Source: Mobula birostris
Lineage: Eukaryota
Direction: 5' to 3'
Assembly: GCF_030028105.1 (NCBI RefSeq)
Contig: NC_092370.1
Location: forward strand, 113,970,793 to 114,034,792
Length of the DNA: 64,000 bases
Numbering within the stretch: the first letter of the stretch is position 1; every line of letters begins with the position of its first letter. Under the pieces are notes generated by a model, which made no database searches, was not told the DNA's origin, and saw only the letters and a program-made list of their open reading frames with translations. Below are positions 8,860 through 61,331 of this stretch, piece by piece. The position numbers and the translations under genes are program-made.

Positions 8860-10551
<1,692 letters not shown>

Positions 10552-10599
10552 TATTTGAAGGCATCATTTTCTCTGCTATGAGCTTCTTAGCTTCCAGGT

Positions 10600-11185: not shown

Positions 11186-11760
11186 TGTCATGGTCCAGTC
11201 CGTGAAGACTGTAATCCGGTTCAAGGTGTGGTCCATCGACCCTTGCTCCAGGTTTTCCTGTCTACCCTGTTTCTGTTCATGTTGAGCTCTAATTGAGTCA
11301 GCTGATGCTCGTTGGGGCTGGCTGCATAAATACCTTCAGAGACCAGGGTGTGGCTGCTGGATTGTTCTTGTCCTTACTCCTTGCATCCCTTCCCCTGCCC
11401 TCTGTTTCCTCGCCTGAAGCCTTGCCGGTAACTCTTGCCTCGCCTCAAGTTCTCGTTTCGCCTTGCAATGCCTGAAGCCCTGCCTTGCCTTGCTGTCTTG
11501 TCCTGGAGCCAGCCCGTACCAGCTCCCTTCCTGTCTCTTGCCTCCGTCAGGTAAGCCAGGCCGTCTTACTGATACCTACAGTTGGTTCTGTCACTTCCTG
11601 TCCCTTGCCTCCATCGGGTGGAGTTCCGCGCCCTGCCCAGGAGGAGCTTCCAGTCTCCTGCCTCACCTCGCCTCAAGTCTCAAGTCCCCAGCCTGCGTCC
11701 AAGCCAGGCCTCAAGTCTCAAGTCTCCAGGCTCCTGTCAAGACTCGCCTCAAGTCTGAGG
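11186..11760 (+). mobile_element. LTR-like 5' end that grades into the satellite
   Basis: Starts TGTCATGG (same terminus as the minus strand of the solo LTR at 6020-6419). AP-1/E-box TGAGTCAGCTG (11294-11304), TATA-like CATAAATA (11325-11332), then increasingly repetitive GCCTCAAG/GCCTGAAG motifs. The 3' end (..CA + CCTGT TSD) is not in the window. Confidence 0.6.
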
Positions 11761-14700
11761 TCTCCAACCTCCTACAAAGCCTCGCTTCAAGTCTCTAGCC
11801 TCTAGCCTCTAGACTGAAGACTCCAGACTCCTGCCTAAGCTCAAGCCTGACGACTCCAACATCCCGCCTAACCACTAGCCTGAAGACTCGAGCCTCGTGC
11901 TTAGCCACTAGCCTGAAGAGTCCAGCCTCCTGCCTAGTCACAAGCCTTAAGACACCAGCCTCCTGCTTAGCCTCAAGCCTGGACTCTAGCCTCCTGCTTA
12001 ACTTCTAGCCTGAAGACTCCAGCCTCCTGCCTAGCCTCAAGCTTAAAGACCCCAGCCTCCTGCCAAGCCTCAAGCCTGAAGACTCCAGCTTCCTTCCTAT
12101 CCTGATGCCTGAAGACTCCAGCCTCCTGCCTAGCCTCAAGCCTGAAGACTCCAGCCTCCTGCCCAGCCTCGCCTCGTCTCAAGTCTCTAACCTCCTACAA
12201 AGCCTCGCTTCAAGTCTCTAGCCTCTAGCCTCTAGACTGAAGACTCCAGACTCCTGCCTAAGCTCAAGCCTGACGACTCCAACATCCCGCCTAACCACTA
12301 GCCTGAAGACTCGAGCCTCGTGCTTAGCCACTAGCCTGAAGAGTCCAGCCTCCTGCCTAGTCACAAGCCTTAAGACACCAGCCTCCTGCTTAGCCTCAAG
12401 CCTGAAGACTCCTGCATCCTGCCTAGCCTCACGCCTGAAGATTCCAGCCTCCTGCCTAGCCGCAATACTGAAGACTCCAGCCTCATGCCTAGCCTCGTCT
12501 CAAGTCACAAGTCTCCAGCCTCCTGCCAAGCCACAAGCCTGAAGACTCCAGGCTCCTGCCTAGCCTAAGCCTGAAGGCTCAAGCCTCCTGCCTAACTTCA
12601 AGTCCGAAGACTCCAGCCTCCTGCCTAGCCTCTATCCTGAAGACTTCAGCCTCCTGCCTCGCCTCAAGCCTGAAGACTCCAGTCTCCTGCCTAGCCTCAA
12701 GCCTGAAGATGCCAGACTCCTGCCTAGCCTCAGCCTCAATCCTAGTCTCAAGCCTGAAGACTCCAGCCTACTGCCTAGCCTCAAGCCTGAAGGCTCAAGC
12801 CTCCTGCTTAGCCTCAAGCCTGAAGACTCCAGCCTCCTGCTTGGCATCACGCCTGAAGACTCCAGCCTCCTGCCTAGCCTCAAGCTTGAAGACTCAAGCC
12901 TTCTGCCTAACCTCGTCTGAAGACTCCAGCCTCCTGCCTAGCCTCAAACCTGAAGAGTCCAGTCTCACGCCTAGCCTGAAGCCTAAAGACTCCAAACTCC
13001 TGCCTAGCCTCAAACCTAAACACTTCAGATTCCTGCCTACCCTCAAGCCTGAAGACTCCAGCTTCCTGCCTATCCTGATGCCTGAAGACTCCAGCCTCCT
13101 GCCTAGCCTCAAGCCTGAAGACTCCAGCCTCCTGCCTAGCCTCAATACTGAAAACTCCAGCCTCATGCCCAGCCTCGTCTCAAGTCACAAGTCTCCAGCC
13201 TCCTGCCAAGCCACAAGCCTAAAGACTCCAGGCTCCTGCCTAGCCTCAAGCCTGAAGACTCAAGCCTCCTGCCTACCCTCAAACTTGAAGACTCCATCCT
13301 CCTGCCTAACCTCAAGTCTGAAGACTCAAGCCTCCAGCCTTACTTCAAGCCTGAAGTCTCCAGCCTCCTGCCTAGATTCTAGACTGAAGACTCCAGCCTC
13401 CAGCCTAGCCTCTAGGGGCAAAACTCCAACCCCCTGCCTCACCTCTAACCTGAAGATTCCATCCTCCCGCCTAGCCTCAAGCCTGAATACGCCAGACTCC
13501 TGCCGAGCCTCAGCCTCAATCCTGACGACTCCAGCCTCCTGCTTAGTCTCAAGCCTGAAGACTCCAGCCTCCTGCCTAGCCTCAAGCCTGAAGACTCCAG
13601 TCTCCTGCCTAGCCTCAAGCCTGAAGACTCCAGACTCCTGCTTAGCCTCAGTCTCAATCCTGACGACTGCAGCCTCCTGCTTAGACTCAAGACTGAAGAC
13701 TCCAGCCTTCTGCCTAGCATCACGCCTGAAGACTCCAGCCTCCTGCCTAGCCTCAAACCTGAAGAGTCCAGTCTCCTTCCTAGCCTCAAGCGTAAAGACT
13801 CCAAACTCCTGCCTAGCCTCAAGCCTAAACACTCCAGATTCCTGCCTAGCCTGAAGCCTGAGGACTCCAGCTTCCTGCCTATCCTGATGCCTGAAGACTC
13901 CAGCCTCCTGCCTAGCCTCAAACCTGAAGACGACAGCCTCCTGCAGAGCCTCAAGCCTGAAGACTCAAACCTCCTGCCTAGCCTCAAGCCTGAAGACTCC
14001 AGCCTCCTGCCTAGCCTCAATACTGAAGACTCCAGCCTCATGCCTAGCCTCGTCTCAAGTCACAAGTCTCCAGCCTCCTGCCTAGCTTCTAGCCTGAAGA
14101 CTCCAGCCTCCAGCCTAGCCTCAAGTCTGAAGACTCCAGCCTTCTGCCTAGCCTCTAGTCGGAAAACTCCAACCCCCTGCCTCACCTCTAACCTGAAGAT
14201 TCCATCCTCCCGCCTAGCCTCAAGCCTGAATACTCCAAACTCCTGCCTAGCCTCAGCCTCAATCCTGACGACCCCAGCCTCCTGCTTAGTCTCAAGCCTG
14301 AAGACTCCAGCCTCCTGCCTAGCCTCAAGCCTGAAGGCTCAAGCCTCCTGCTTAGCCTCAAGCTTGAAGACTCGAGACTTCTGCCTAACCTCAAGTCTGA
14401 AGACTCCAGCCTCCTGCCTAGCCTCAAACCTGAAGGCTCAAGCCTCCTGCTTAGCCTCAAGCTTGAAGACTCGAGACTTCTGCCTAACCTCAAGTCTGAA
14501 GACTCCAGCCTCCTGCCTAGCCTCAAACCTGAAGACTCCAGCCTCCTGCCGAGCCTCTATCCTGAAGATTCCAGCCTCCTGCCTAGCCTCAAGCCTGAAG
14601 ACTCCAGTCTCCTGCCTAGGCTCAAGCCTAAACACTCCAGACTCCTGCCTATCCTCAAGCCTGAAGACTCTAGCCTCCTGCCTAGCTTCAGGACTGAAGA

Positions 14701-17700
14701 CTCCAGCCTCCTGCCTAGCTTCAGGACTGAAGACTCCAGCCTCCTGCCCAGCCTCAAGCCTGAAGATTCCAGCTTCCTGCCCAGCCTCAATTCTGAATAC
14801 ACCAGCCTCCTCCCTAGCCTCAAGACAGAAGATTCCAGCCTGCTGCCTAACCTCAAGCTTGACGACTCCAACATCCTGCCTAGCCTCTAGCCTGATGACT
14901 CCAGACTCCTGCCGAGCCTCGGCCTCAATCCTGACGACTCCAGCCTCCCGCTTAGTCTCCAGCCTGAAGACTCCAGCCTCTTGCCTAGCCTCACCCCTGA
15001 AGACTCCAGCCTCCTGCCTAGCCTCAAGCTTGAAGACTCAAGCCTCCTGCCTAACCTCAAGTCTGAAGACTCCAGCCTCCAGCCTAACTTCAAGCCTGAA
15101 GTCTCCAGCCTCCTGCCTAGATTCTAGCCTGAAGACTCCAGCCTCCAGCCTAGCCTCTAGGGGCAAAACTCCAACCTCCTGCCTCACCTCTAACCTGAAG
15201 ATTCCATCCTCCCACCTAGCCTCAAGCCTGAATACGCCAGACTCCTGCCGAGCCTCAGCCTCAATCCTGACGACTCCAGCCTCCTGCTTAGTCTCATGCC
15301 TGAAGACTCCAGCCTCCTGCCTAGCCTCAAGCCTGAAGACTCCAGTCTCCTGCCTAGCCTCAAGCCTGAAGACTCCAGACTCCTGCTTAGCCTCAGTCTC
15401 AATCCTGACGACTGCAGCCTCCTGCTTAGACTCAAGACTGAAGACTCCAGCCTCCTGCCTAGCATCACGCCTGAAGACTCAAGCCTTCTGCCGAACCTCA
15501 AGTCTGAAGACTCCAGCCTCCTGCCTAGCCTCAAACCTGAAGAGTCCAGTCTCCTCCCTAGCCTCAAGCGTAAAGACTCCAAATTCCTGCCTAGCCTCAA
15601 GCCTAAACACTCCAGATTTCTGCCTAGCCTGAAGCCTGAGGACTCCAGCTTCCTGCCTATCCTGATGCCTGAAGACTCCAGCCTCCTGCCTAGCCTCAAA
15701 CCTGAAGACGACAGCCTCCTGCAGAGCCTCAAGACTGAAGACTCAAGCCTCCTGCCAAGCCTCAAACCTGAAGACTCCAGCCTCCTGCCTAGCCTCAATA
15801 CTGAAGACTCCAGCCTCATGCCTAGCCTCGTCTCAAGTCACAAGTCTCCAGCCTCCTGCCTAGCTTCTAGCCTGAAGACTCCAGCCTCCAGCCTAGCCTC
15901 AAGTCTGAAGACTCCAGCCTTCTGCCTAGCCTCTAGCCAGAAAACTCCAACCCCCTGCCTCACCTCTAACCTGAAGATTCCATCCTCCCGCCTAACCTCA
16001 AGCCTGAATACTCCAAACTCCTGCCTAGCCTCAGCCTCAATCCTGACGACCCCAGCCTCCTGCTTAGTCTCAAGCCTGAAGACTCCAGCCTCCTGCCTAG
16101 CCTCAAGCCTGAAGGCTCAAGCCTCCTGCTTAGCCTCAAGCTTGAAGACTCGAGACTTCTGCCTAACCTCAAGTCTGAAGACTCCAGCCTCCTGCCTAGC
16201 CTCAAACCTGAAGAGTCTAGTCTCCTGCCTAGCCTAAACCCTGAAGACTCCAGCCACCTGCCTAGCCTCAAGCCTGAACACTCCAGAGTCCTGCCCAGCC
16301 TGATGCCTGAAGACACCAGCCTCCTGCCTAGCCTCAAGCCTAAAGACTCTAGCCTCCTGCCGAGCCTCAAGCCTGAAGACTCCAGCCTCCTGCCTATACT
16401 CAAGCCTGAAGACTCAAGCCTCCTGCCTAGCCTCAAGCCTGATGACTCCAGCCTCCTGCCTAGCCTCACGCCTGAAGACTCAAGCCTCCTGCCTAGCCTC
16501 AAGCTTGAAGACTCCAGCCTCCTGCCTAATCTCAAGTCTGAAGACTCCAACCTTCAGCCTAGCCTCAAACCTGAAGACTCCAGCCTCCTGCATAGCCTCA
16601 AGCCTCAGGACTCAAGCCTCCTGCTTAGCCTGAAGCCTAAAGACTCTAGCCTCCTGCCGAGCCTCAAGCCTGAAGACTTCAGCCTCCAGCCTAGCCTCAC
16701 GCCTGAAGACTCCAGCCTCCTGCCTAGCTTCTAGACTGAAGACTCCAGCCTCCAACCTAGCCTCAAGTCTGAAGACTCCAGCCTCCTGCCGAGCCTCTAT
16801 CCTGAAGATTCCAGCCTCCTGCCTAGCCTCAAGCCTGAAGACTCCAGTCTCCTGCCTAGCCTCAAGCCTAAACACTCCAGACTCCTGCCTATCCTCAAGC
16901 CTGAAGACTCTAGCCTCCTGCCTAGCTTCAGGACTGAAGACTCCAGCCTCCTGCCTAGCTTCAGGACTGAAGACTCCAGCCTCCTGCCCAGCCTCAAGCC
17001 TGAAGATTCCAGCTTCCTGCCCAGCCTCAATTCTGAATACACCAGCCTCCTCCCTAGCCTCAAGACAGAAGATTGCAGCCTGCTGCCTAACCTCAAGCTT
17101 GACGACTCCAACATCCTGCCTAGCCTCTAGCCTGATGACTCCAGACTCCTGCCGAGCCTCGGCCTCAATCCTGACGACTCCAGCCTCCCGCTTAGTCTCC
17201 AGCCTGAAGACTCCAGCCTCTTGCCTAGCCTCACCCCTGAAGACTCCAGCCTCCTGCCTAGCCTCAAGCTTGAAGACTAAAGCCTCCTGCCTAACCTCAA
17301 GTCTGAAGACTCCAGCCTCCAGCCTAACTTCAAGCCTGAAGTCTCCAGCCTCCTGCCTAGATTCTAGCCTGAAGACTCCAGCCTCCAGCCTAGCCTCTAG
17401 GGGCAAAACTCCAACCCCCTGCCTCACCTCTAACCTGAAGATTCCATCCTCCCGCCTAGCCTCAAGCCTGAATACGCCAGACTCCTGCCGAGCCTCAGCC
17501 TCAATCCTGACGACTCCAGCCTCCTGCTTAGTCTCAAGCCTGAAGACTCCAGCCTCCTGCCTAGCCTCAAGCCTGAAGACTCCAGTCTCCTGCCTAGCCT
17601 CAAGCCTGAAGAGTCCAGTCTCCTCCCTAGCCTCAAGCGTAAAGACTCCAAACTCCTGCCTAGCCTCAAGCCTAAATACTCCAGATTGCTGCCTAGCCTG

Positions 17701-20329
17701 AAGCCTGAGGACTCAAGCTTCCTGCCTATCCTGATGCCTGAAGACTCCAGCCTCCTGCCTAGCCTCAAACCTGAAGACGACAGCTTCCTGCAGAGCCTCA
17801 AGCCTGAAGACTCAAGCCTCCTGCCTAGCCTCAAGCCTGAAGACTCCAGCCTCCTGCCTAGCCTCAATACTGAAGACTCCAGCCTCATGCCTAGCCTCGT
17901 CTCAAGTCACAAGTCTCCAGCCTCCTGCCTAGCTTCTAGCCTGAAGACTCCAGCCTCCAGCCTAGCCTCAAGTCTGAAGACTCCAGCCTTCTGCCTAGCC
18001 TCTAGCCGGAAAACTCCAACCCCCTGCCTCACCTCTAACCTGAAGATTCCATCCTCCCGCCTAGCCTCAAGCCTGAATACGCCAGACTCCTGCCGAGCCT
18101 CAGCCTCAATCCTGACGACTCCAGCCTCCTGCTTAGTCTCAAGCCTGAAGACTCCAGCCTCCTGCTTAGCCTCAAGCCTGAAGACTCCAGTCTCCTGCCT
18201 AGCCTCAAGCCTGAAGACTCCAGACTCCTGCTTAGCCTCAGACTCAATCCTGACGACTGCAGCCTCCTGCTTAGACTCAAGACTGAAGACTCCAGCCTCC
18301 TGCCTAGCATCACGCCTGAAGACTCCAGCCTCCTGCCTAGCCTCAAGCTTGAAGACTCAAGCCTTCTGCCTAACCTCAAGTCTGAAGACTCCAGCCTCCT
18401 GCCTAGCCTCAAACCTGAAGAGTCCAGTCTCCTCCCTAGCCTCAAGCGTAAAGACTCCAAACTCCTGCCTAGCCTCAAGCCTAAATACTCCAGATTGCTG
18501 CCTAGCCTGAAGCCTGAGGACTCAAGCTTCCTGCCTATCCTGATGCCTGAAGACTCCAGCCTCCTGCCTAGCCTCAAACCTGAAGACGACAGCTTCCTGC
18601 AGAGCCTCAAGCCTGAAGACTCCAGCCTCCTGCCTAGCCTCAATACTGAAGACTCCAGCCTCATGCCTAGCCTCGTCTCAAGTCACAAGTCTCCAGCCTC
18701 CTGCCTAGCTTCTAGCCTGAAGACTCCAGCCTCCAGCCTAGCCTCAAGTCTGAAGACTCCAGCCTTCTGCCTAGCCTCTAGCCGGAAAACTCCAACCCCC
18801 TGCCTCACCTCTAACCTGAAGATTCCATCCTCCCGCCTAGCCTCAAGCCTGAATACTCCAAACTCCTGCCTAGCCTCAGCCTCAATCCTGACGACCCCAG
18901 CCTCCTGCTTAGTCTCAAGCCTGAAGACTCCAGCCTCCTGCCTAGCCTCAAGCCTGAAGGCTCAAGCCTCCTGCTTAGCCTCAAGCTTGAAGACTCGAGA
19001 CTTCTGCCTAACCTCAAGTCTGAAGACTCCAGCCTCCTGCCTAGCCTCAAACCTGGAGTCCAGTCTCCTGCCTAGCCTAAACCCTGAAGACTCCAGCCAC
19101 CTGCCTAGCCTCAAGCCTGAACACTCCAGAGTCCTGCCCAGCCTGATGCCTGAAGACACCAGCCTCCTGCCTAGCCTCAAGCTTAAAGACTCTAGCCTCC
19201 TGCCGAGCCTCAAGCCTGAAGACTCCAGCCTCCTGCCTATACTTAAGCCTGAAGACTCAAGCCTCCTGCCTAGCCTCAAGCCTGAAGACTCCAGCCTCCT
19301 GCCTAGCCTCACGCCTGAAGACTCTAGCCTCCTGCCTAGCCTCAAGCTTGAAGACTCCAGCCTCCTGCCTAATCTCAAGTCTGAAGACTCCAACCTCCAG
19401 CCTAGCCTCAAACCTGAAGACTCCAGCCTCCTGCATAGCCTCAAGCCTCAGGACTCAAGCCTCCTGCTTAGCCTGAAGCCTAAAGACTCTAGCCTCCTGC
19501 CGAGCCTCAAGCCTGAAGACTTCAGCCTCCAGCCTAACCTCACGCCTGAAGACTCCAGCCTCCTGCCTAGCTTCTAGACTGAAGACTCCAGCCTCCAACC
19601 TAGCCTCAAGTCTGAAGACTCCAGCCTCCTGCCGAGCCTCTATCCTGAAGATTCCAGCCTCCTGCCTAGCCTCAAGCCTGGAGACTCCAGTCTCCTGCCT
19701 AGCCTCAAGCCTAAACACTCCAGACTCCTGCCTATCCTCAAGCCTGAAGACGCTAGCCTCCTGCCTAGCTTCAGGACTGAAGACTCCAGCCTCCTGCCTA
19801 GCCACAAGCCTGAAGATTACAGCCTCCTGCCCAGCCGCAAGCCTGAAGATTCCAGCTTCCTGCCCAGCCTCAATTCTGAATACACCAGCCTCCTCCCTAG
19901 CCTCAAGACAGAAGATTCCAGCCTGCTGCCTAACCTCAAGCTTGACGACTCCAGCATCCTGCCTAGCCTCTAGCCTGATGACTCCAGCCTCCTGCCAAGC
20001 TCCAAGCCTGAAGTCTCCAGCCTCTTGCCAAGCTCCAAGCCTGAAGTCTCCAGCCTCCTGCCTAGCCTCAATCCTGACGACTCCAGCCTCCTTCATAGCC
20101 TCAAGCCTGAAGACTCCAGCCTCCTGCCAAGCCTCAAGCCTCAGGACTCAAGCCTCCTGGTTAGCCTGAAGCCTGAAGACTCCAGCCTCCAGCGTAGCCG
20201 CACACCTGAAGACTCCAACCTCCTGCCTAGCCTCTAGCCTGAAGTCTACAGCCTCCTGCCTAGCCTCTAGACTAAACACTCCAGCCTCCTGCCTAGCCTC
20301 AATCTTAAAGACACCAGCCTCCTGCCTAA

Positions 20330-23300
20330 CCTCAAACCTGAAGAGTCAAGTCTCCTACCTAGACTCAAGACTGAAGACTCCAGCCTCATGCCTAGCCTCG
20401 TCTCAAGTCTCAAATCTCCAGCCTCCTGCCAAGCCACAAGCCAAAAGATTCCCGGCTCATACCTAGCCTCAAGACTAAAGAGTCAAGCCTCCTTCTTAGC
20501 CTCAAGCTTGAAGACTCCAGCATCCTGCCTAACCTCAAGTCTGAAGATTCCAGTCTCCTGCCTAGCCTGACGCCTGAAGACTCCAGCCTCCTGCCTAGCC
20601 GCAATCCTGACGACTCCAGCCTCCTGCCTAGCCTCCAGTCTGAAGACTCCAGCCTCCTGCCTAGATTCTAGCCTGAATACTCAAGCCTACAGCCTAGCCG
20701 CACGTCTGAAGGTTCCAGCCTCCTGCCGAGCCTCTAGTCGGAAGACTCCAGCCTCCTGCTTCACCTCTAACCTGAAGACTCCAGCCTCCTGCCTAGCCTC
20801 AAACATGAAGAGTCCAGTCTCCTGCCTAGCCTCAAGCCTAAACACTCCAGCCTCCTGCCTAGCCTCAAGCCTGAAGACTCTAGCCTCCTGCCTAGATTCA
20901 GGCCTGAAGACCCTAGCCTCCTGCCTGGCCTCAAGCCTGAAGACTCCAGCCTCCTGCCTAGCCACAAACCTGAAGAATCCAGGCTCCTGCATAGACACCA
21001 GCCTGAAGACTCCAGCTACCTGCCTATCCTGATGCCTGAAAACACCAGCCTCCTGCCTAGCCTCTAGCCTGAAGACTCAAGCCTCCTGCTTAGCCTCAAG
21101 CCTGAAGACTCCAGCCTCCTGCCTAGCCTCACGCTTGAAGAATCAAACCTCCTGCTTACCCTCAAGCCTGAAGGCTCCAGCCTCCTGCCTAGCCTCAATC
21201 CTGAAGACCCCAGACTTCTGTTTTGTCACAAGCCTGAAGTCTCCATTCTCCTGCCAAGCCTCAATCAGGACGACTCCAACATCATGCCTAGTATCTAGCC
21301 TGAAGACTGCAGCCTCCTACCGAGCCTCCAGCCTGAAGACTCCAGCCTCCGGCCTAGCATCAGCCTCAATCCTGACGACTCCAGCTTCCTGCTTAGTTTC
21401 AGGCCTGAAGACTCCAACCTCCTGCCTAGCCTCTATCCTGAAGCCTACAGCCTCCTGCCTAGTGTCTAGCCTGAAGACTCCAGCATCAAGCCAGAAGGCT
21501 CCAGCCTCCTGCCTAGCCTCAATCCTAAAGACTCCAGCCTCCTCCCTAGCCTCAAGCCTGAAGACTCCAGCCTCCTCCCTAGCCTCTAGCCAGAAGACTC
21601 CAGCCTCCTGCCTAACCTCTAGCCTGAAGACTCCAAACTCCAGCCTAGCCTCAAGCCTGAAGACTCAAGACTCTTGCTTAGCCTCAAGCTGAAGGCTCCA
21701 GCCCCCTGCCTAGCCTCAAGCCTCCTGCTTAGGCTCAAGCCTAAAGACTCCAGCCTCCTGCCTCGACTCAAGCCAGAACACTCCAGATTCCTGCCCAGCC
21801 TGATGCCTGAAGACACCAGTCTCCTGCTTAACCTCAAGCCTGAAGACTCTAGCCTCCTGCCTAGCCTCTAGGCTGAAGAATCCAGACTCCTGCCTAGCCT
21901 CAATCCTGAATACTCCAGCCTCCTGCCTAGCCTCACGCCTGAAGACTCCAGCCTCTTGCGTAGCCTCAATCCTGAAGACTCCAGCCTCCTGCCTAGCCTC
22001 AAGCCTGAGGACTCAAGCCTCCTGCTTAGCCTCAAGCCTGAAGACTCCAGCCTCCTGCCTAGCCTCACGCCTGAAGACTCCAGCCTCCTGCGTAGCCTCA
22101 AGTTTGAAGACTCTAGCCTCCTGTCTAACCCCAAGTCTGAAGGCTCCAGCCTCCAGCCTATCCTCAAGCCTGAAAACTCCAGCCTTCTGCCTAGCTTCTA
22201 GCCTGAATACGCCAGCCTCCAGCCTAGCCTCAAGTCTGAAGACTCCAGCCTCCTGCCTAGCCTCTAGTCGGAAGACTCCAGCCTCCTGCTTCACCTCTAA
22301 CCTGAAGACTCTAGCCTCCTGCGTAGCCTCACGCCTGAAGGCGCCAGCCTCCTGCCTAGCCTCAATCCTGAATACTCCAGCCTCCTTCCTAGCCTAAAGC
22401 CTGAAGGCACCAGCCTCCTGCCCCGCCTCAATCCTGAAGACTACAGCCTCATGCCTACTCTCAAGTATGAAGACTCCAGCCTCCTGCCTAGCCTCAAGCC
22501 TGAGGACTCAACCCTCCTGCCTAGCTTCTAGCCTGAATACTCCAGCCTCCAGCCTAGCCTCAAGTCTGAAGACTACAGCCTCATGCCTAGTCTCAAGCCT
22601 GAAGACTCCAGCCTCCTGCCTAGCCTCACGCCTGAAGACTCCAGCCTCCCGCCTAGCTTCTAGCCTGAATACTCCAGCCTCCAGCCTAGCCTCAAGTCTG
22701 AAGACTACAGCCTCCTGCCTAGCCTCAAGCCTGAAGACTCTAGCCTCCTGCCTAGATTCAGGCCTGAAGACCCTAGCCTCCTGCCTAGCCTCAAGCCTGA
22801 AGACTCCAGCCTCCTGCCTAGCCACAAACCTGAAGAATCCAGCCTCCTGCATAGACACCAGCCTGAAGACTCCAGCTTCCTGCCTATCCTGATGCCTGAA
22901 AACACCAGCCTCCTGCCTAGCCTCTAGCCTGAAGATTCAAGCCTCCTGCTTAGCCTCAAGCCTGAACACTCCAGCATCCTGCCTAGCCTCACGCTTGAAG
23001 AATCAAACCTCCTACTTACCCTCAAGCCTGAAGGCTCCAGCCTCCTGCCTGGCCTAAATCCTGAAGACCCTAGACTCCTGCTTTGTCACAAGCCTGAAGT
23101 CTCCATCCTCCTGCCTTGCCTCAATCAGGACGACTCCAACATCATGCCTAGTATCTAGCCTGAAGACTGCAGACTCCTGCCTAGCCTCCAGCCTGAATAC
23201 TGCAGCCTCCTCCCTAGCCTCTAGCCAGAAGACTCCAGACTCCTGCCTAGCCTCAAGTCTGAAGACTCAAGCCTCTTGCTTAGCCTCAAGCTGAAGACTC

Positions 23301-26300
23301 CAGCCTCCTGCCTAACCTCAAGCCTCCTGCTTAGGCTCAAGCCTAAAGACTCCAGCCTCCTGCCTCGCTTCAAGCCAGAACACTCCATATTCCTGCCCAG
23401 CCTGATGCCTGAAGACATCAGTCTCCTGCCTAACCTCAAGACTGAAGACTCTAGCCTCCTGCCTAGCCTCACGCCTGAAGACTCCAGCCTCCTGCCTAGC
23501 CTCAATCCTGAATAATCCAGCCTCGTTCCTAGCCTAAGGCCTGAAGGCAGCAGCCTCCTGCCTAGCCTCAATCCTGAAGACTCCAGCCTCCTGCCTAGCC
23601 TCAAGCATGAAGACTCCAGCCTCCTGCCTAGCCTGAAGCCTGAGGACTCAAGCCTCCTGCTTAGCCTCAAGCCTGAAGACTCCAGCCTCCTGCCTAGCCT
23701 CACGCCTGAAGACTCCAGCCTCCTGCGTAGCCTCAAGTTTGCAGACTCTAGCCTCCTGTCTAACCTCAAGTCTGAAGGCTCCAGCCTCCAGCCTAGCCTC
23801 AAGCCTGAAAACTCCAGACCGCTGCCTAGCTTCTAGCCTGAATACGCCAGCCTCCAGCCTAGCCTCAAGTCTGGAGACTCCAGCCTCCTGCCTAGCCTCT
23901 AGTCGGAACACTCCAGCCTCCTGCTTCACCTCTAACTTGAAGACTCTAGCCTCCTGCGTAGCCTCACGCCTGAAGACTCCAGCCTCCTGCCTAGCCTCAA
24001 CCCTGAATATTCCAGCCTCCTTCATAGCCTAAAGCCTGAAGGCACCAGCCTCCTGCCTAGCCTCACGCCTGAAGACTCCAGCCTCCCGCCTAGCTTCTAG
24101 CCTGAATACTCCAGCCTCCAGCCTGGCCTCAAGTCTGAAGACTACAGCCTCCTGCCTAGCCTCTAGTCGGAAGACTCCAGCCTCCTGCTTCACCTGTAAC
24201 CTGAAGACTCCAGCCTCCTGCCTAGCCTCAATCCTGAAGACTCCAGCCTTCTGCCTACCCTCACGCCTGAAGACTCCAGCCTCTTGCGTAGCCTCAAGTT
24301 TGAAGACTCTAGCCTCCTGTCTAACCTCAAGTCTGAAGGCTCCAGCCTCCAGCCTAGCCTCAAGCCTGAAAACTCCAGCCTTCTGCCTAGCTTCTAGCCT
24401 GATTACGCCAGCCTCCAGCCTAGCCTCAAGTCTGAAGACTCCAGCCTCCTGCCTAGCCTCTAGTCGGAAGACTCCAGCCTCCTGCTTCACCTCTAACCTG
24501 AAGACTCTAACCTCCTGCCTATCTTCACGCCTGAAGGCTCCAGCCTCCTGCCTAGCCTCAATCCTGAATACTCCAGCCTCCTTCCTAGCCTAAAGCCTGA
24601 AGGTACCAGCCTCCTGCCCCGCCTCAATCCTGAAGACTACAGCCTCCTGCCTAGTCTCAAGCATGAAGACTCCAGCCTCCTGCCTAGCCTCAAGCCAGAG
24701 GACTCAACCCTCCTGCCTAGCCTCAAGCCTGAAGACTCCAGCCTCCTGCCTAGCCTCACGCCTGAAGACTCCAGCCTCCCGCCTAGCTTCTAGCCTAAAT
24801 ACTCCAGCCTCCAGCCTATCCTCAAGTCTGAAGACTACAGCCTCCTGCCTAGCCTCTAGTCGGAAGACTCCAGCCTCCTGCTTCACCTCTAACCTGAAGG
24901 GTCCATCCTCCTGCCTAGCCTCAAACCTGAAGACCCCAGTCTCCTGCCTAGCCTCAAGCCTAAACACTCCAGCCTCCTGCCTAGCATCAAGCCTGAAGAC
25001 TCTAGCCTCCTTCCTAGCCTAAAGCCTGAAGGCACCAGACTCCTGCCGAGCCTCAATCCTGAAGACTCCAGCCTTCTGCCTTGCCTCAAGCATGAAGACT
25101 CCAGCCTCCTGCCTAGGCTCAAGCCCGAGGACTTAAGCCTCCTGCTTAGCCTCAAGCCTGAAGACTCCAGCCTCCTGCCTAGCCTCACGCCTGAAGACTC
25201 CAGCCTCCTGCGTAGCCTCAACCCTGAAAACTCCAGCCTCCTGCCTAGATTCTAGCCTGAATACTCAAGCCTACAGCCTAGCCGCAAGTCTGAAGGCTCC
25301 AGCCTCCTGCCTAGCCTCTAGTCGGAAGGCTCCAGCCCCCTGCTTCACCTCTAACCTGAAGACTCCAGCCTCCTGCCTAGCCTGAAACCTGAAGACTCAA
25401 GCCTCCTGCCTAGCCTCAAGCTGAAGACTCTAGCCTCCTGCCTAGATTCAGGCCTGAAGACCCTAGCCTCCTGCCTGGCCTCAAGCCTGAAGACTCCAGC
25501 CTCCAGCCTAGCCACAAACCTGAAGAATCCTGCCTTCTGCATAGACACCAGCCTGAAGACTCCAGCTTCCTGCCTATCCTGATGCCTGAAGACTCCAGCC
25601 TCCTGCCTAGCCTCAATCCTGAATTTTTCCAGCCTCCTTCGTAGCCTAAAGCCTGAAGGCACCAGCCTCCTGCTTAGCCTCAAGCCTGAAGACTCCAGCC
25701 TCCTGCCTAGCCTCATGCCTGAAGGCTCCAGCCTCCTGCCTAGCCTCAATCCTGAATACTCCAGCCTCCTTCCTAGCCTAAAGCCTGAAGGCACCAGCCT
25801 CCTGCCCCGCCTTAATCCTGAAGACTACAGCCTCCTGCCTAGTCTCAAGCATGAAGACTCCAGCCTCCTGCCTAGCCTCAAGCCAGAGGACTCAACCCTC
25901 CTGCCTAGCCTCAAGACTGAAGACTCCAGCCTCCAGCCTAGCCTCAATCCTGAAGACTCCAGCCTTCAGCCTAGCCTCAATCATGAAGACTCCAGCCTCC
26001 TGCCTAGCCTCAAGCCTGAGGACTCAAGCCTCCTGCTTAGCCTCAAACCTGAAGACCCCAGTCTCCTGCCTAGCCTCAAGCCTAAACACTCCAGCCTCCT
26101 GCCTAGCATCAAGCCTGAAGACTCTAGCCTCCTTCCTAGCCTAAAGCATGAAGGCACCAGACTCCTGCCGAGCCTCAATCCTGAAGACTCCAGCCTTCTG
26201 CCTTGCCTCAGGCATGAAGACTCCAGCCTCCTGCCTAGGCTCAAGCCCGAGGACTTAAGCCTCCTGCTTAGCCTCAAGCCTGAAGACTCCAGCCTCCTGC

Positions 26301-29300
26301 CTAGCCTCACGCCTGAAGACTCCAGCCTCCTGCGTAGCCTCAACCCTGAAAACTCCAGCCTCCTGCCTAGATTCTAGCCTGAATACTCAAGCCTACAGCC
26401 TAGCCGCAAGTCTGAAGGCTCCAGCCTCCTGCCTAGCCTCTAGTCGGAAGACTCCAGCCCCCTGCTTCACCTCTAACCTGAAGACTCCAGCCTCCTGCCT
26501 AGCCTCAAACCTGAAGACTCAAGCCTCCTGCCTAGCCTCAAGCTGAAGACTCTAGCCTCCTGCCTAGATTCAGGCCTGAAGACCCTAGCCTCCTGCCTGG
26601 CCTCAAGCCTGAAGACTCCAGCCTCCTGCCTAGCCACAAACCTGAAGAATCCTGCCTCCTGCATAGACACCAGCCTGAAGACTCCAGCTTCCTGCCTATC
26701 CTGATGCCTGAAGACTCCAGCCTCCTGCCTAGCCTCAATCCTGAATTTTTCCAGCCTCCTTCGTAGCCTAAAGCCTGAAGGCACCAGCCTCCTGCTTAGC
26801 CTCAAGCCTGAAGACTCCAGCCTCCTGCCTAGCCTCATGCCTGAAGACTCCAGCCTCCTGCCTAGCCTCATGCCTGAAGGCTCCAGCCTCCTGCCTAGCC
26901 TCAATCCTGAATACTCCAGCCTCCTTCCTAGCCTAAAGCCTGAAGGCACCAGCCTCCTGCCCCGCCTTAATCCTGAAGACTACAGCCTCCTGCCTAGTCT
27001 CAAGCATGAAGACTCCAGCCTCCTGCCTAGCCTCAAACCTGAAGAGTCAAGTCTCCTACCTAGACTCAAGACTGAAGACTCCAGCCTCATGCCTAGCCTC
27101 GTCTCAAGTCTCAAATCTCCAGCCTCCTGCCAAGCCACAAGCCAAAAGATTCCCGGCTCATACCTAGCCTCAAGACTAAAGAGTCAAGCCTCCTTCTTAG
27201 CCTCAAGCTTGAAGACTCCAGCATCCTGCCTAACCTCAAGTCTGAAGATTCCAGTCTCCTGCCTAGCCTGACGCCTGAAGACTCCAGCCTCCTGCCTAGC
27301 CGCAATCCTGATGACTCCAGCCTCCTGCCTAGCCTCCAGTCTGAAGACTCCAGCCTCCTGCCTAGATTCTAGCCTGAATACTCAAGCCTACAGCCTAGCC
27401 GCACGTCTGAAGGTTCCAGCCTCCTGCCGAGCCTCTAGTCGGAAGACTCCAGCCTCCTGCTTCACCTCTAACCTGAAGACTCCAGCCTCCTGCCTAGCCT
27501 CAAACATGAAGAGTCCAGTCTCCTGCCTAGCCTCAAGCCTAAACACTCCAGCCTCCTGCCTAGCCTCAAGCCTGAAGACTCTAGCCTCCTGCCTAGATTC
27601 AGGCCTGAAGACCCTAGCCTCCTGCCTGGCCTCAAGCCTGAAGACTCCAGCCTCCTGCCTAGCCACAAACCTGAAGAATCCAGGCTCCTGCATAGACACC
27701 AGCCTGAAGACTCCAGCTACCTGCCTATCCTGATGCCTGAAAACACCAGCCTCCTGCCTAGCCTCTAGCCTGAAGACTCAAGCCTCCTGCTTAGCCTCAA
27801 GCCTGAAGACTCCAGCCTCCTGCCTAGCCTCACGCTTGAAGAATCAAACCTCCTGCTTACCCTCAAGCCTGAAGGCTCCAGCCTCCTGCCTAGCCTCAAT
27901 CCTGAAGACCCCAGACTTCTGTTTTGTCACAAGCCTGAAGTCTCCATTCTCCTGCCAAGCCTCAATCAGGACGACTCCAACATCATGCCTAGTATCTAGC
28001 CTGAAGACTGCAGCCTCCTACCGAGCCTCCAGCCTGAATACTGCAGCCTCCTGCCTAGCCTCCAGCCTGAAGACTCCAGCCTCCGGCCTAGCATCAGCCT
28101 CAATCCTGACGACTCCAGCTTCCTGCTTAGTTTCAGGCCTGAAGACTCCAACCTCCTGCCTAGCCTCTATCCTGAAGCCTACAGCCTCCTGCCTAGTGTC
28201 TAGCTTGAAGACTCCAGCATCAAGCCAGAAGGCTCCAGCCTCCTGCCTAGCCTCAATCCTAAAGACTCCAGCCTCCTCCCTAGCCTCAAGCCTGAAGACT
28301 CCAGCCTCCTCCCTAGCCTCTAGCCAGAAGACTCCAGCCTCCTGCCTAACCTCTAGCCTGAAGACTCCAAACTCCAGCCTAGCCTCAAGCCTGAAGACTC
28401 AAGACTCTTGCTTAGCCTCAAGCTGAAGGCTCCAGCCCCCTGCCTAGCCTCAAGCCTCCTGCTTAGGCTCAAGCCTAAAGACTCCAGCCTCCTGCCTCGA
28501 CTCAAGCCAGAACACTCCAGATTCCTGCCCAGCCTGATGCCTGAAGACACCAGTCTCCTGCTTAACCTCAAGCCTGAAGACTCTAGCCTCCTGCCTAGCC
28601 TCTAGGCTGAAGAATCCAGACTCCTGCCTAGCCTCAATCCTGAATACTCCAGCCTCCTGCCTAGCCTCACGCCTGAAGACTCCAGCCTCTTGCGTAGCCT
28701 CAATCCTGAAGACTCCAGCCTCCTGCCTAGCCTCAAGCCTGAGGACTCAAGCCTCCTGCTTAGCCTCAAGCCTGAAGACTCCAGCCTCCTGCCTAGCCTC
28801 ACGCCTGAAGACTCCAGCCTCCTGCGTAGCCTCAAGTTTGAAGACTCTAGCCTCCTGTCTAACCCCAAGTCTGAAGGCTCCAGCCTCCAGCCTATCCTCA
28901 AGCCTGAAAACTCCAGCCTTCTGCCTAGCTTCTAGCCTGAATACGCCAGCCTCCAGCCTAGCCTCAAGTCTGAAGACTCCAGCCTCCTGCCTAGCCTCTA
29001 GTCGGAAGACTCCAGCCTCCTGCTTCACCTCTAACCTGAAGACTCTAGCCTCCTGCGTAGCCTCACGCCTGAAGGCACCAGCCTCCTGCCTAGCCTCAAT
29101 CCTGAATACTCCAGCCTCCTTCCTAGCCTAAAGCCTGAAGGCACCAGCCTCCTGCCCCGCCTCAATCCTGAAGACTACAGCCTCATGCCTACTCTCAAGC
29201 ATGAAGACTCCAGCCTCCTGCCTAGCCTCAAGCCTGAGGACTCAACCCTCCTGCCTAGCTTCTAGCCTGAATACTCCAGCCTCCAGCCTAGCCTCAAGTC

Positions 29301-32300
29301 TGAAGACTACAGCCTCATGCCTAGTCTCAAGCCTGAAGACTCCAGCCTCCTGCCTAGCCTCACGCCTGAAGACTCCAGCCTCCCGCCTAGCTTCTAGCCT
29401 GAATACTCCAGCCTCCAGCCTAGCCTCAAGTCTGAAGACTACAGCCTCCTGCCTAGCCTCAAGCCTGAAGACTCTAGCCTCCTGCCTAGATTCAGGCCTG
29501 AAGACCCTAGCCTCCTGCCTAGCCTCAAGCCTGAAGACTCCAGCCTCCTGCCTAGCCACAAACCTGAAGAATCCAGCCTCCTGCATAGACACCAGCCTGA
29601 AGACTCCAGCTTCCTGCCTATCCTGATGCCTGAAAACACCAGCCTCCTGCCTAGCCTCTAGCCTGAAGATTCAAGCCTCCTGCTTAGCCTCAAGCCTGAA
29701 CACTCCAGCATCCTGCCTAGCCTCACGCTTGAAGAATCAAACCTCCTACTTACCCTCAAGCCTGAAGGCTCCAGCCTCCTGCCTGGCCTAAATCCTGAAG
29801 ACCCTAGACTCCTGCTTTGTCACAAGCCTGAAGTCTCCATCCTCCTGCCTTGCCTCAATCAGGACGACTCCAACATCATGCCTAGTATCTAGCCTGAAGA
29901 CTGCAGACTCCTGCCTAGCCTCCAGCCTGAATACTGCAGCCTCCTCCCTAGCCTCTAGCCAGAAGACTCCAGACTCCTGCCTAGCCTCAAGTCTGAAGAC
30001 TCAAGCCTCTTGCTTAGCCTCAAGCTGAAGACTCCAGCCTCCTGCCTAACCTCAAGCCTCCTGCTTAGGCTCAAGCCTAAAGACTCCAGCCTCCTGCCTC
30101 GCTTCAAGCGAGAACACTCCATATTCCTGCCCAGCCTGATGCCTGAAGACATCAGTCTCCTGCCTAACCTCAAGACTGAAGACTCTAGCCTCCTGCCTAG
30201 CCTCACGCCTGAAGACTCCAGCCTCCTGCCTAGCCTCAATCCTGAATAATCCAGCCTCGTTCCTAGCCTAAGGCCTGAAGGCAGCAGCCTCCTGCCTAGC
30301 CTCAATCCTGAAGACTCCAGCCTCCTGCCTAGCCTCAAGCATGAAGACTCCAGCCTCCTGCCTAGCCTGAAGCCTGAGGACTCAAGCCTCCTGCTTAGCC
30401 TCAAGCCTGAAGACTCCAGCCTCCTGCCTAGCCTCACGCCTGAAGACTCCAGCCTCCTGCGTAGCCTCAAGTTTGCAGACTCTAGCCTCCTGTCTAACCT
30501 CAAGTCTGAAGGCTCCAGCCTCCAGCCTAGCCTCAAGCCTGAAAACTCCAGACCGCTGCCTAGCTTCTAGCCTGAATACGCCAGCCTCCAGCCTAGCCTC
30601 AAGTCTGGAGACTCCAGCCTCCTGCCTAGCCTCTAGTCGGAACACTCCAGCCTCCTGCTTCACCTCTAACTTGAAGACTCTAGCCTCCTGCGTAGCCTCA
30701 CGCCTGAAGACTCCAGCCTCCTGCCTAGCCTCAACCCTGAATATTCCAGCCTCCTTCATAGCCTAAAGCCTGAAGGCACCAGCCTCCTGCCTAGCCTCAC
30801 GCCTGAAGACTCCAGCCTCCCGCCTAGCTTCTAGCCTGAATACTCCAGCCTCCAGCCTGGCCTCAAGTCTGAAGACTACAGCCTCCTGCCTAGCCTCTAG
30901 TCGGAAGACTCCAGCCTCCTGCTTCACCTGTAACCTGAAGACTCCAGCCTCCTGCCTAGCCTCAATCCTGAAGACTCCAGCCTTCTGCCTACCCTCACGC
31001 CTGAAGACTCCAGCCTCTTGCGTAGCCTCAAGTTTGAAGACTCTAGCCTCCTGTCTAACCTCAAGTCTGAAGGCTCCAGCCTCCAGCCTAGCCTCAAGCC
31101 TGAAAACTCCAGCCTTCTGCCTAGCTTCTAGCCTGATTACGCCAGCCTCCAGCCTAGCCTCAAGTCTGAAGACTCCAGCCTCCTGCCTAGCCTCTAGTCG
31201 GAAGACTCCAGCCTCCTGCTTCACCTCTAACCTGAAGACTCTAACCTCCTGCCTATCTTCACGCCTGAAGGCTCCAGCCTCCTGCCTAGCCTCAATCCTG
31301 AATACTCCAGCCTCCTTCCTAGCCTAAAGCCTGAAGGTACCAGCCTCCTGCCCCGCCTCAATCCTGAAGACTACAGCCTCCTGCCTAGTCTCAAGCATGA
31401 AGACTCCAGCCTCCTGCCTAGCCTCAAGCCAGAGGACTCAACCCTCCTGCCTAGCCTCAAGCCTGAAGACTCCAGCCTCCTGCCTAGCCTCACGCCTGAA
31501 GACTCCAGCCTCCCGCCTAGCTTCTAGCCTAAATACTCCAGCCTCCAGCCTATCCTCAAGTCTGAAGACTACAGCCTCCTGCCTAGCCTCTAGTCGGAAG
31601 ACTCCAGCCTCCTGCTTCACCTCTAACCTGAAGGGTCCATCCTCCTGCCTAGCCTCAAACCTGAAGACCCCAGTCTCCTGCCTAGCCTCAAGCCTAAACA
31701 CTCCAGCCTCCTGCCTAGCATCAAGCCTGAAGACTCTAGCCTCCTTCCTAGGCTCAAGCCTAAAGGCACCAGACTCCTGCCGAGCCTCAATCCTGAAGAC
31801 TCCAGCCTTCTGCCTTGCCTCAAGCATGAAGACTCCAGCCTCCTGCCTAGGCTCAAGCCCGAGGACTTAAGCCTCCTGCTTAGCCTCAAGCCTGAAGACT
31901 CCAGCCTCCTGCCTAGCCTCACGCCTGAAGACTCCAGCCTCCTGCGTAGCCTCAACCCTGAAAACTCCAGCCTCCTGCCTAGATTCTAGCCTGAATACTC
32001 AAGCCTACAGCCTAGCCGCAAGTCTGAAGGCTCCAGCCTCCTGCCTAGCCTCTAGTCGGAAGGCTCCAGCCCCCTGCTTCACCTCTAACCTGAAGACTCC
32101 AGCCTCCTGCCTAGCCTCAAGCTGAAGACTCTAGCCTCCTGCCTAGATTCAGGCCTGAAGACCCTAGCCTCCTGCCTGGCCTCAAGCCTGAAGACTCCAG
32201 CCTCCAGCCTAGCCACAAACCTGAAGAATCCTGCCTCCTGCATAGACACCAGCCTGAAGACTCCAGCTTCCTGCCTATCCTGATGCCTGAAGACTCCAGC

Positions 32301-33731
32301 CTCCTGCCTAGCCTCAATCCTGAATTTTTCCAGCCTCCTTCGTAGCCTAAAGCCTGAAGGCACCAGCCTCCTGCTTAGCCTCAAGCCTGAAGACTCCAGC
32401 CTCCTGCCTAGCCTCATGCCTGAAGGCTCCAGCCTCCTGCCTAGCCTCAATCCTGAATACTCCAGCCTCCTTCCTAGCCTAAAGCCTGAAGGCACCAGCC
32501 TCCTGCCCCGCCTTAATCCTGAAGACTACAGCCTCCTGCCTAGTCTCAAGCATGAAGACTCCAGCCTCCTGCCTAGCCTCAAGCCAGAGGACTCAACCCT
32601 CCTGCCTAGCCTCAAGACTGAAGACTCCAGCCTCCAGCCTAGCCTCAATCCTGAAGACTCCAGCCTTCAGCCTAGCCTCAATCATGAAGACTCCAGCCTC
32701 CTGCCTAGCCTCAAGCCTGAGGACTCAAGCCTCCTGCTTAGCCTCAAACCTGAAGACCCCAGTCTCCTGCCTAGCCTCAAGCCTAAACACTCCAGCCTCC
32801 TGCCTAGCATCAAGCCTGAAGACTCTAGCCTCCTTCCTAGCCTAAAGCATGAAGGCACCAGACTCCTGCCGAGCCTCAATCCTGAAGACTCCAGCCTTCT
32901 GCCTTGCCTCAGGCATGAAGACTCCAGCCTCCTGCCTAGGCTCAAGCCCGAGGACTTAAGCCTCCTGCTTAGCCTCAAGCCTGAAGACTCCAGCCTCCTG
33001 CCTAGCCTCACGCCTGAAGACTCCAGCCTCCTGCGTAGCCTCAACCCTGAAAACTCCAGCCTCCTGCCTAGATTCTAGCCTGAATACTCAAGCCTACAGC
33101 CTAGCCGCAAGTCTGAAGGCTCCAGCCTCCTGCCTAGCCTCTAGTCGGAAGACTCCAGCCCCCTGCTTCACCTCTAACCTGAAGACTCCAGCCTCCTGCC
33201 TAGCCTCAAACCTGAAGACTCAAGCCTCCTGCCTAGCCTCAAGCTGAAGACTCTAGCCTCCTGCCTAGATTCAGGCCTGAAGACCCTAGCCTCCTGCCTG
33301 GCCTCAAGCCTGAAGACTCCAGCCTCCTGCCTAGCCACAAACCTGAAGAATCCTGCCTCCTGCATAGACACCAGCCTGAAGACTCCAGCTTCCTGCCTAT
33401 CCTGATGCTTGAAGACTCCAGCCTCCTGCCTAGCCTCAAACCTGAATTTTTCCAGCCTCCTTCGTAGCCTAAAGCCTGAAGGCACCAGCCTCCTGCTTAG
33501 CCTCAAGCCTGAAGACTCCAGCCTCCTGCCTAGCCTCATGCCTGAAGACTCCAGCCTCCTGCCTAGCCTCATGCCTGAAGGCTCCAGCCTCCTGCCTAGC
33601 CTCAATCCTGAATACTCCAGCCTCCTTCCTAGCCTAAAGCCTGAAGGCACCAGCCTCCTGCCCCGCCTTAATCCTGAAGACTACAGCCTCCTGCCTAGTC
33701 TCAAGCATGAAGACTCCAGCCTCCTGCCTAG
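20330..33731. repeat. Two tandem copies of a 6701-bp higher-order repeat (about 203 monomers)
   Basis: Marker CCTCAAACCTGAAGAGTCAAGTCTCCTACCTAGACTC starts at 20330, 27031 and 33732. Identical ORFs recur at offsets of 6701/6734 (e.g. 21135/27836, 24029/30763, 25715/32416). Confidence 0.9.
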
Positions 33732-33769
33732 CCTCAAACCTGAAGAGTCAAGTCTCCTACCTAGACTCA

Positions 33770-59600: not shown

Positions 59601-61318
59601 CCTGAAGATTCCATCCTCCCGCCTAGCCTCAAGCCTGAATACGCCAGACTCCTGCCGAGCCTCAGCCTCAATCCTGACGACTCCAGCCTCCTGCTTAGTC
59701 TCAAGCCTGAAGGCTCCAGTCTCTTGCCTAGCCTCAAGCCTGAAGACTCCAGACTCCTGCTTAGCTTCAGTCTCAATCCTGACGACTGCAGCCTCCTGCT
59801 TAGACTCAAGACTGAAGACTCCAGCCTCCTGCCTAGCATCACGCCTGAAGACTCCAGCCTCCTGCCTAGCCTCAAGCTTGAAGACTCAAGCCTTCTGCCT
59901 AACCTCAAGTCTGAAGACTCCAGCCTCCTGCCTAGCCTCAAACCTGGAGTCCAGTCTCCTCCCTAGCCTCAAGCGTAAAGACTCCAAACTCCTGCCTAGC
60001 CTCAAGCCTAAACACTCCAGATTCCTGCCTAGCCTGAAGCCTGAGGACTCCAGCTTCCTGCCTATCCTGATGCCTGAAGACTCCAGCCTCCTGCCTAGCC
60101 TCAAACCTGAAGACGACAGCCTCCTGCAGAGCCTCAAGCCTGAAGACTCAAGCCTCCTGCCTAGCCTCAAGCCTGAAGACTCCAGCCTCCTGCCTAGCCT
60201 CAATACTGAAGACTCCAGCCTCATGCCTAGCCTCGTCTCAAGTCACAAGTCTCCAGCCTCCTGCCTAGCTTCTAGCCTGAAGACTCCAGCCTCCAGCCTA
60301 GCCTCAAGTCTGAAGACTCCAGCCTTCTGCCTAGCCTCTAGCCGGAAAACTCCAACCCCCTGCCTCACCTCTAACCTGAAGATTCCATCCTCCCGCCTAG
60401 CCTCAAGCCTGAATACTCCAAACTCCTGCCTAGCCTCAGCCTCAATCCTGACGACCCCAGCCTCCTGCTTAGTCTCAAGCCTGAAGACTCCAGCCTCCTG
60501 CCTAGCCTCAAGCCTGAAGGCTCAAGCCTCCTGCTTAGCCTCAAGCTTGAAGACTCGAGACTTCTGCCTAACCTCAAGTCTGAAGACTCCAGCCTCCTGC
60601 CTAGCCTCAAACCTGAAGAGTCCAGTCTCCTGCCTAGCCTAAACCCTGAAGACTCCAGCCACCTGCCTAGCCTCAAGCCTGAACACTCCAGAGTCCTGCC
60701 CAGCCTGATGCCTGAAGACACCAGCCTCCTGCCTAGCCTCAAGCTTAAAGACTCTAGCCTCCTGCCTAGCCTCAAACCTGAAGAGTCCAGTCTCCTGCCT
60801 AGCCTAAGCCCTGAAGACTCCAGCCACCTGCCTAACCTCAAGCCTGAACACTCCAGAGTCCTGCCCAGCCTGATGCCTGAAGACACCAGCCTCCTGCCTA
60901 GCCTCAAGCTTAAAGACTCTAGCCTCCTGCCGAGCCTCAAGCCTGAAGACTCCAGCCTCCTGCCTATACTCAAGCCTGAAGACTCAAGCCTCCTGCCTAG
61001 CCTCAAGCCTGAAGACTCCAGCCTCCTGCCTAGCCTCACGCCTGAAGACTCTAGCCTCCTGCCTAGCCTCAAGCTTGAAGACTCCAGCCTCCTGCCTAAT
61101 CTCAAGTCTGAAGACTCCAACCTCCAGCCTAGCCTCAAACCTGAAGACTCCAGCCTCCTGCATAGCCTCAAGCCTCAGGACTCAAGCCTCCTGCTTAGCC
61201 TGAAGCCTAAAGACTCTAGCCTCCTGCCGAGCCTCAAGCCTGAAGACTTCAGCCTCCAGCCTAGCCTCACGCCTGAAGACTCCAGCCTCCTGCCTAGCTT
61301 CTAGACTGAAGACTCCAG

Positions 61319-61331
61319 NNNNNNNNNNNNN
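61319..61331. other. Assembly gap (13 N)
   Basis: Run of 13 Ns. Confidence 1.

Follow-up and report, generated by a model that had tools for sequence, protein, structure and literature searches.

A satellite array of more than 52 kb that probably expanded from a tandem-prone module of a dispersed mobile element

The window analysed here, a 64,000-nucleotide stretch of contig NC_092370.1, is occupied from about position 11649 to its last base (64000) by a tandem array whose end lies beyond the window, and this array directly follows the 5' part of a dispersed, high-copy repeat element that begins at position 11186 (all coordinates are those of the window). An initial annotation of the sequence had proposed that a satellite of more than 52 kb was born from a short tandem tract inside a long terminal repeat (LTR), and the satellite, the motifs at the start of the element, the AP-1/E-box and TATA-like matches and a run of heptamers at the array edge, on which that proposal was built, are all in place. 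The reading that we favour, and to which we give a probability of roughly 0.7, is that the array is an expansion, in the lineage of the source species, of a tandem-prone module inside a dispersed mobile element. The evidence for it comes from the boundary and copy number of the element, from sibling copies of the element in other organisms, and from the structure of the array and of its edge.

Public contigs of four organisms (runs X1, X5, X10 and X9) were aligned on positions 10500-11800 and their depth was summed, a quantity that is not the same as true copy number. Run X1 represents the source species or individual, as one contig is identical to the window over 10531-10867, and in the unique flank the contigs of X5 and X10 diverge from the window by ~3% and ~8-12%, respectively. 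The sequence TGTCATGG begins at 11186 and is directly preceded by CCTGT (11181-11185). At this point the summed depth in X1 rises from ~140 (11116-11159) to 37,000-610,000, with similar steps in X5, X10 and X9, and matching ends at exactly 11185/6 in three contigs (record 4 of X1 and records 19 and 20 of X5), each of which is longer than its matched part. The contigs thus place 11186-11648 in a dispersed multi-copy family whose 5' boundary is sharp and lies at 11185/6, and the treatment of 11186-11650 as a repeat family in the initial annotation is upheld. Dividing the summed depth by that of single-copy contigs suggests, as a rough figure, thousands to tens of thousands of copies, and neither the element nor its first 26 nt was found a second time within the window. 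By word sharing, parts of the 10700-11660 stretch are present in runs of organisms A-G (A being the source species), and contig alignment confirmed the element in six organisms (A, B, C, D, E and G).

Positions 11530-11740, which cover the junction between the element and the array, were compared with contigs of the source species and of organisms D (X10), E (X11) and G (X13). In D and G, most copies leave the window sequence right after an anchor, GGAGCTTCC, that ends at 11650, and continue with AAGACCCCAAGCCTCGAGCC..., a consensus built from 12 (D) and 22 (G) contigs with an agreement of 0.83-0.84. When the consensus from G was aligned with the 33-mer consensus of the array, 24 of 30 positions were identical over all 30 nt, with one gap (p <= 0.0005 against shuffles). 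In E, the depth is ~47,000 through 11650-11681 and below 400 by 11698, and in D, E and G alike the matching depth is down to ~10-370 by 11698-11705. Judged from these consensus sequences and depths, sibling copies carry about one monomer-like unit exactly where the array of the present copy begins, and since the sibling units come after the same anchor, the first unit of the array would be ancestral element sequence. The precursor unit of the satellite directly follows the anchor at 11650, and the monomer-like unit is found also in siblings from organisms in which no satellite words were found; the initial annotation had named siblings devoid of such a proto-repeat as an observation that would speak against its proposal, and on this point the proposal holds. 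A chance abutment, in which an unrelated satellite happens to end beside the repeat and common motifs stem from a shared C/T-rich composition, predicts neither the agreement of the post-anchor consensus with the monomer nor the reach of the family in organism E, at high depth, ~32 bp into the window's first array unit.

The element is continuous with the array, in that it runs to 11648-11650 and the first unit comes directly after it with no unrelated spacer. Two comparisons within the window are nevertheless what chance abutment would lead one to expect: the sharing of 10-mers between 11186-11648 and the array is moderate (17 against 3.9 ± 3.0 in dinucleotide shuffles, with a maximum of 19 and 1 of 300 shuffles above the observed count), and the flank, when forced onto the monomer, gives an identity of 0.50-0.64, which is the background level. 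The cross-species sibling data already largely refute chance abutment, and we regard it as very improbable. The words common to the pre-array stretch and the array (10- to 12-mers) are concentrated in one 15-mer at 11436-11450, and the only element-specific 12-mers from upstream of 11648 that recur in the array are those of this monomer-like stretch and one word at 11479. Since upstream element words are nearly missing from the array, only the monomer module would have been amplified.

At the edge itself, the first windows of 5, 10 and 20 monomers are the most divergent of ~1,570, with identities to the consensus of 0.68, 0.78 and 0.81 against a median of 0.89, and the edge is therefore a real transition, as the initial annotation had described it. 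The gradient from heptamers to 33-mers that it saw there did not survive: the heptamer run (TCTAGCC TCTAGCC TCTAGAC TGAAGAC TCCAGAC, 11794-11828) sits in a segment, 11760-11980, of which a copy with 99.5% identity lies 423 bp downstream. Similarly, the scattered motifs further upstream (GCCTGAAG at 11412 and 11470, GCCTCAAG at 11442), which had been taken for a proto-repeat, fall among GCCT[G/C]AAG-bearing units that form a separate variable module and not a direct precursor of the satellite. Two pieces of the transition zone that had been set apart as non-monomer sequence do recur in the array, CCTCGTCTCAAGTCACAAGTCTCCAGCC with 14 exact copies (and 47 matches at up to 4 mismatches for the version at 11666) and CTCCTGCCTCACCTC with 8 exact copies, but both proved to be monomer material, the 28-mer being the core of a 38-bp monomer type and CTCCTGCCTCACCTC a CTCACCTC variant of the monomer junction with 2 mismatches from the consensus junction. 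Tandem Repeats Finder (TRF) reports 3.8 such 38-bp units at 11666-11809, ahead of the 33-bp array. The features of the element and of the array are listed in Table 1.

Table 1. Features of the element and the array, in window coordinates
Feature	Position	Strand	Basis
5' part of dispersed high-copy repeat, class left open, start TGTCATGG	11186..11648	+	Depth step, contig ends
Promoter-like motif matches: TGAGTCA (11294), CAGCTG (11299), CATAAATA (11325)	11294..11332	+	Sequence motifs
Variable module, three degenerate ~30-bp units, each with GCCT[G/C]AAG	11402..11500	+	Direct repeats D4 (spacing 30) and D6 (spacing 58)
67-bp module, 1.4 units in this copy	11524..11619	+	Direct repeat D3, 86% identical, spacing 67
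~22-bp unit (CGCGCCCTGCCCAGGAG...), single here, then anchor GGAGCTTCC (ends 11650)	11620..11650	+	Sibling loose-end consensus
Array edge: first (putatively ancestral) unit, 38-bp variants (11667-11742), one 33-mer, 26-bp remnant	11649..11801	+	TRF, wrap-around alignment, contig depth
33-bp satellite array, consensus CTAGCCTCAAGCCTGAAGACTCCAGCCTCCTGC	11802..64000	+	TRF: 1,570.9 copies, 79% matches, score 60,218

Beyond the edge, the 33-bp unit spans 52.2 kb head to tail, and the sole break is a run of 13 N. This run lies at 61319-61331 and is flanked on both sides by some of the less regular monomers. In a wrap-around alignment to the consensus, the 33-bp length accounts for 1,373 monomers, the 38-bp and 34-bp lengths for 80 each and odd lengths for a few, with 396 distinct monomers among 1,576, and composition is flat along the array (GC 0.56-0.57, GC skew about -0.39). 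The higher-order repeats that had been reported for the array resolved into something less orderly: chaining of exact 40-mers detected no single regular higher-order repeat in the array, and instead revealed nested duplications whose offsets span 1.1-6.7 kb (including 6,734, 4,485, 3,563, 3,081, 2,423 and 1,645 bp). The largest duplicated blocks, of 1.8-4 kb, are 99.7-99.96% identical, and the array interior would therefore have been amplified very recently. As a separate observation, the ratio of observed to expected CpG is 0.16 in the array (11800-61000), 0.43 in the element (11186-11648) and 0.66 in the upstream flank; no CpG occurs in the 33-mer consensus, and CpG is present in the 38-mers of the edge and in the sibling proto-unit (CTCGCC, CTCGAG).

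The distribution of satellite words among organisms bears on the direction of the derivation. The share of satellite words is highest in organism A, the source species (0.66), followed by B, its sister species (0.14), H (0.13) and C (0.06-0.08), and by exact 31-mer sharing no satellite words were found in D, E, F and G, all of which hold part of the 10700-11660 stretch. This distribution fits a satellite younger than the element, which it would not by itself prove. The opposite direction, in which an older satellite gave one monomer to a mobile element that then spread the monomer, and in which an old array joins a copy of the element in the window, can draw on the precedent of mobile elements with satellite-like repeats, such as the Helentrons of oyster (PMC7492417), and on the fact that exact-word sharing does not prove D, E and G to be free of the satellite. 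On this account, however, one would not expect the array to start exactly where siblings bear their unit, after the same anchor; nor is there an array upstream of the element, the satellite words occur in fewer organisms than those of the element, and the near-identical duplicates in the interior speak of very recent growth. We therefore consider the opposite direction improbable, although less so than chance abutment.

Expansion from the element would have proceeded as follows. An old, dispersed, high-copy mobile element would have inserted with its start at 11186, its family being composed of a unique head of ~215 bp and then of tandem-prone modules of ~30 bp, 67 bp, ~22 bp and, lastly, a unit of ~30-38 bp. 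The last module would have grown in the lineage of the source species into the 33-bp satellite of more than 52 kb, probably by replication slippage and then by unequal exchange, and later duplications of several kilobases within the array would have given it the look of higher-order repeats, while the edge monomers adjoining the element would have escaped homogenisation and stayed divergent. We infer that the derivation ran from element to satellite and that the expansion may have taken place at this very locus. No cellular function is implied by this explanation. Several points weigh against it. The far end of the array lies beyond the window, and a resumption of the element there is not visible; the depths are sums over contigs, from which no true copy number follows; and the copies from related species were compared as members of a family, and need not be orthologous to this insertion. 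That D, E and G lack the satellite is concluded from exact 31-mers and from the 38-mer edge, and a diverged satellite could escape both; because exact 31-mers vanish quickly with divergence, the 31-mer result is weak as proof. Finally, the proto-unit is known as a consensus of 30 letters built from short contigs in which one unit is visible, and a short array could be present in siblings.

The class of the element is a separate question, and we leave it open. In the version of the initial annotation, the element is the LTR of a retrovirus or retrotransposon, with U3, R and U5, of which a tract in R/U5 expanded, and the remainder of the LTR and a CCTGT target-site duplication would lie beyond the array. 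Consistent with this, the sharp family boundary is followed directly by TG, the first two letters of the element, and the TATA-like box CATAAATA appears to be conserved in the family, showing no variant at >=10% among the variants listed for sibling contigs; depth over 11204-11423 is roughly even (2-3 fold) in X5, X10 and X9, as for a discrete unit and not a 5'-truncated LINE (long interspersed nuclear element), and a tRNA-like head was not found. A dispersed family with a sharp common boundary is, however, a feature common to every mobile-element class, and further LTR hallmarks are missing or lie elsewhere: there is no AATAAA or ATTAAA in 11100-11810, although a polyadenylation signal could lie beyond the array, and nothing like a primer-binding site (TGG...) after 11639-11650, and an LTR pair, a target-site duplication, gag/pol and the 3' end would all fall outside the window. 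The AP-1 match also differs from the family consensus, in that position 11298 is G in most sibling contigs and the T found here is the minority letter in all four runs; the match is thus private to this copy. Moreover, non-autonomous or composite elements, too, typically reach an apparent copy number as high as the one seen here (thousands to tens of thousands) and have a body that is made up of several different minisatellites. There is a CA at 11638-11639, ahead of the point where many siblings cease to match, and the family continues beyond it; no purine tract was found in the low-copy upstream stretch 11116-11185. Overall, the part of the earlier proposal that stood is the origin of the satellite within the element, which the sibling units support, and the parts that gained no comparable support are the LTR label, the placement of the tract in R/U5 and birth at this exact locus; an LTR is one option for the element, and a rather doubtful one. 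A tRNA-derived short interspersed nuclear element (SINE) was also considered and rejected, as ARAGORN reported nothing in 10900-11800 and Rfam at E <= 5 yielded no more than two matches, both at chance level, and no known RNA family was found in 11100-11800.

The modules upstream of the junction differ in number between copies of the family. The module at 11402-11500 is often skipped in siblings (joints of 49-199 bp), and its depth in X10 is ~100x below that on either side. In contigs of X1, X11 and X13 the 67-mers lie head to tail, with 11619 leading back to 11581 by way of 28 intervening letters (39 + 28 = 67). The 39-nt core of this module, 11581-11619, has the highest summed depth in all four of the runs X1, X10, X11 and X13 (0.8 million in X1 and X10, 1.8 million in X11 and 57,000 in X13), with its peak at 11594-11609; the core lies 9-34x above the adjoining 11538-11561, and this ratio is 19-34 in the other species and ~9 in the source species. 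An exact-pattern scan of metagenome contigs for the 67-bp core returned no match. For the ~22-bp unit, the consensus beyond 11641/11643 in X1, X10, X11 and X13 repeats ...CGCGCCCTGCCCAGGAGT..., and siblings would accordingly have a second such unit. Together with the 33-bp array, these patterns allow a more speculative suggestion, that the family has repeatedly seeded satellites as a mobile chain of minisatellite modules, different ones of which expanded in different lineages. In that case, it may have been the 33/38-bp module that grew in the source species and in its closest relatives, and the 67-bp module that did so in others, and one transposon family would be a portable library that supplies different satellites to related species. 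We advance this tentatively and put it well behind the derivation of the present array from the element.

We also considered whether the array could be a giant coding repeat, with a unit of 11 residues, driven from the TATA-like box and spliced between CAG and GTAAGC (11551). The unit of 33 bp does correspond to 11 codons, the 33-mer consensus is open in 4 of 6 frames, and a TATA-like box and the donor-like GTAAGC lie upstream of the array. The open frames, however, reach at most 581 residues, occur dispersed in several frames on both strands and never join into a continuous one, and ~160 times a monomer of 34 or 38 bp breaks the frame. The putative promoter and first exon are moreover part of a repeat with thousands of copies, and in RNA-labelled runs of the source species the share of the sampled satellite words is no more than 0.02 (for the words of 10700-11660 it is 0.02-0.05). 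A protein-database search with the reading frame at the junction returned 446 word-sharing candidates, none of them significant. With no continuous frame and with monomers that break it, a coding repeat was rejected, and we consider it scarcely credible.

Upstream of the element, the flank contains a pair of immunoglobulin V-set segments, a LINE reverse-transcriptase fragment and remains of Tc1/mariner elements. The V-set open frames, at 1347-1706 and 2787-3140 (both on the minus strand), match Pfam with E ~1e-9 to 1e-10 and terminate in YYCA-type motifs; they resemble antigen-receptor V segments, which would place the satellite ~8 kb from a receptor V cluster. At 8857-10554, two Tc1/mariner-like fragments lie head to head in a large imperfect palindrome, several inverted-repeat arms of which are 85-94% complementary and one arm of which has a DDE_3 match. 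The stretch 10896-11115 is very abundant by depth, is followed by the low-copy spacer 11116-11159, and is read as the 3' tail of a LINE. This LINE 3' end occurs twice in opposite orientation, at 3739-4011 (minus strand) and 10933-11100 (plus strand), with 65 nt that are 88% complementary, and the second copy, whose end lies ~90 bp short of the element, is more abundant than any other sequence of the compared stretch in X1, X5, X10 and X9. In X1, X5 and X10, individual contigs whose depth is close to single-copy level pass directly from 10795 to 11148 and lack 352 bp, the LINE tail included. This joint could represent an empty-site paralogue or allele, and with one side anchored by 22 letters it is perhaps spurious.

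Among known systems, SVA and LAVA of hominoids are composite retroposons with GC-rich variable-number tandem repeats, which in SVA reach kilobases and not tens of kilobases. The element described here is like them in being dispersed and non-coding and in having a body of ~30-70 bp tandem repeats that vary in number between copies; unlike them, it shows no Alu-like, SINE-R or poly(A) parts, and there is no sequence relationship. The expansion of element sequence into satellite DNA is an already established kind of event to which the locus adds one case, and the current understanding of satellite origins is unchanged by it. The junction between parent and array is nonetheless seldom so clean, with the first unit, unhomogenised edge monomers and a young, still-growing interior in one contiguous stretch, and related species appear to keep the pre-expansion state, so that the locus could be used for dating or modelling how, in a vertebrate, about one to a few units become a satellite that exceeds 50 kb. 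In the Pacific oyster, Helentron arrays are likewise satellite-like repeats spread as the cargo of a mobile element, and those arrays are reported to be short and to travel with the element (PMC7492417), whereas here one copy holds more than 52 kb; Helitron hallmarks were not seen in the present element, which starts with TG and not TC. According to a 2025 review, satellites can originate from the LTRs, from the untranslated regions and from the internal arrays of transposons (PMC12628747), and in Lathyrus sativus 9 of 11 major satellites derive from short arrays inside LTR retrotransposons (PMC7004042). Satellites from Ogre-type elements are treated by Vondrak et al. 2020 (PMC7004042) and by Macas et al. 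2009, the latter as cited in PMC12628747. The present case differs from that of Lathyrus in its host, a vertebrate to judge from the antigen-receptor V segments and the LINE reverse-transcriptase fragment in the window, in the unproven class of its element, in the position of the tract, which lies downstream of a promoter-like head and not in a 3' untranslated region, and in its siblings, which show about one unit rather than a demonstrated short array. What it would share with the Ogre-type satellites of Lathyrus is the course of events itself, in which a short tandem tract in a dispersed element has expanded into a long array that is still joined to it, while sibling copies keep the short form.

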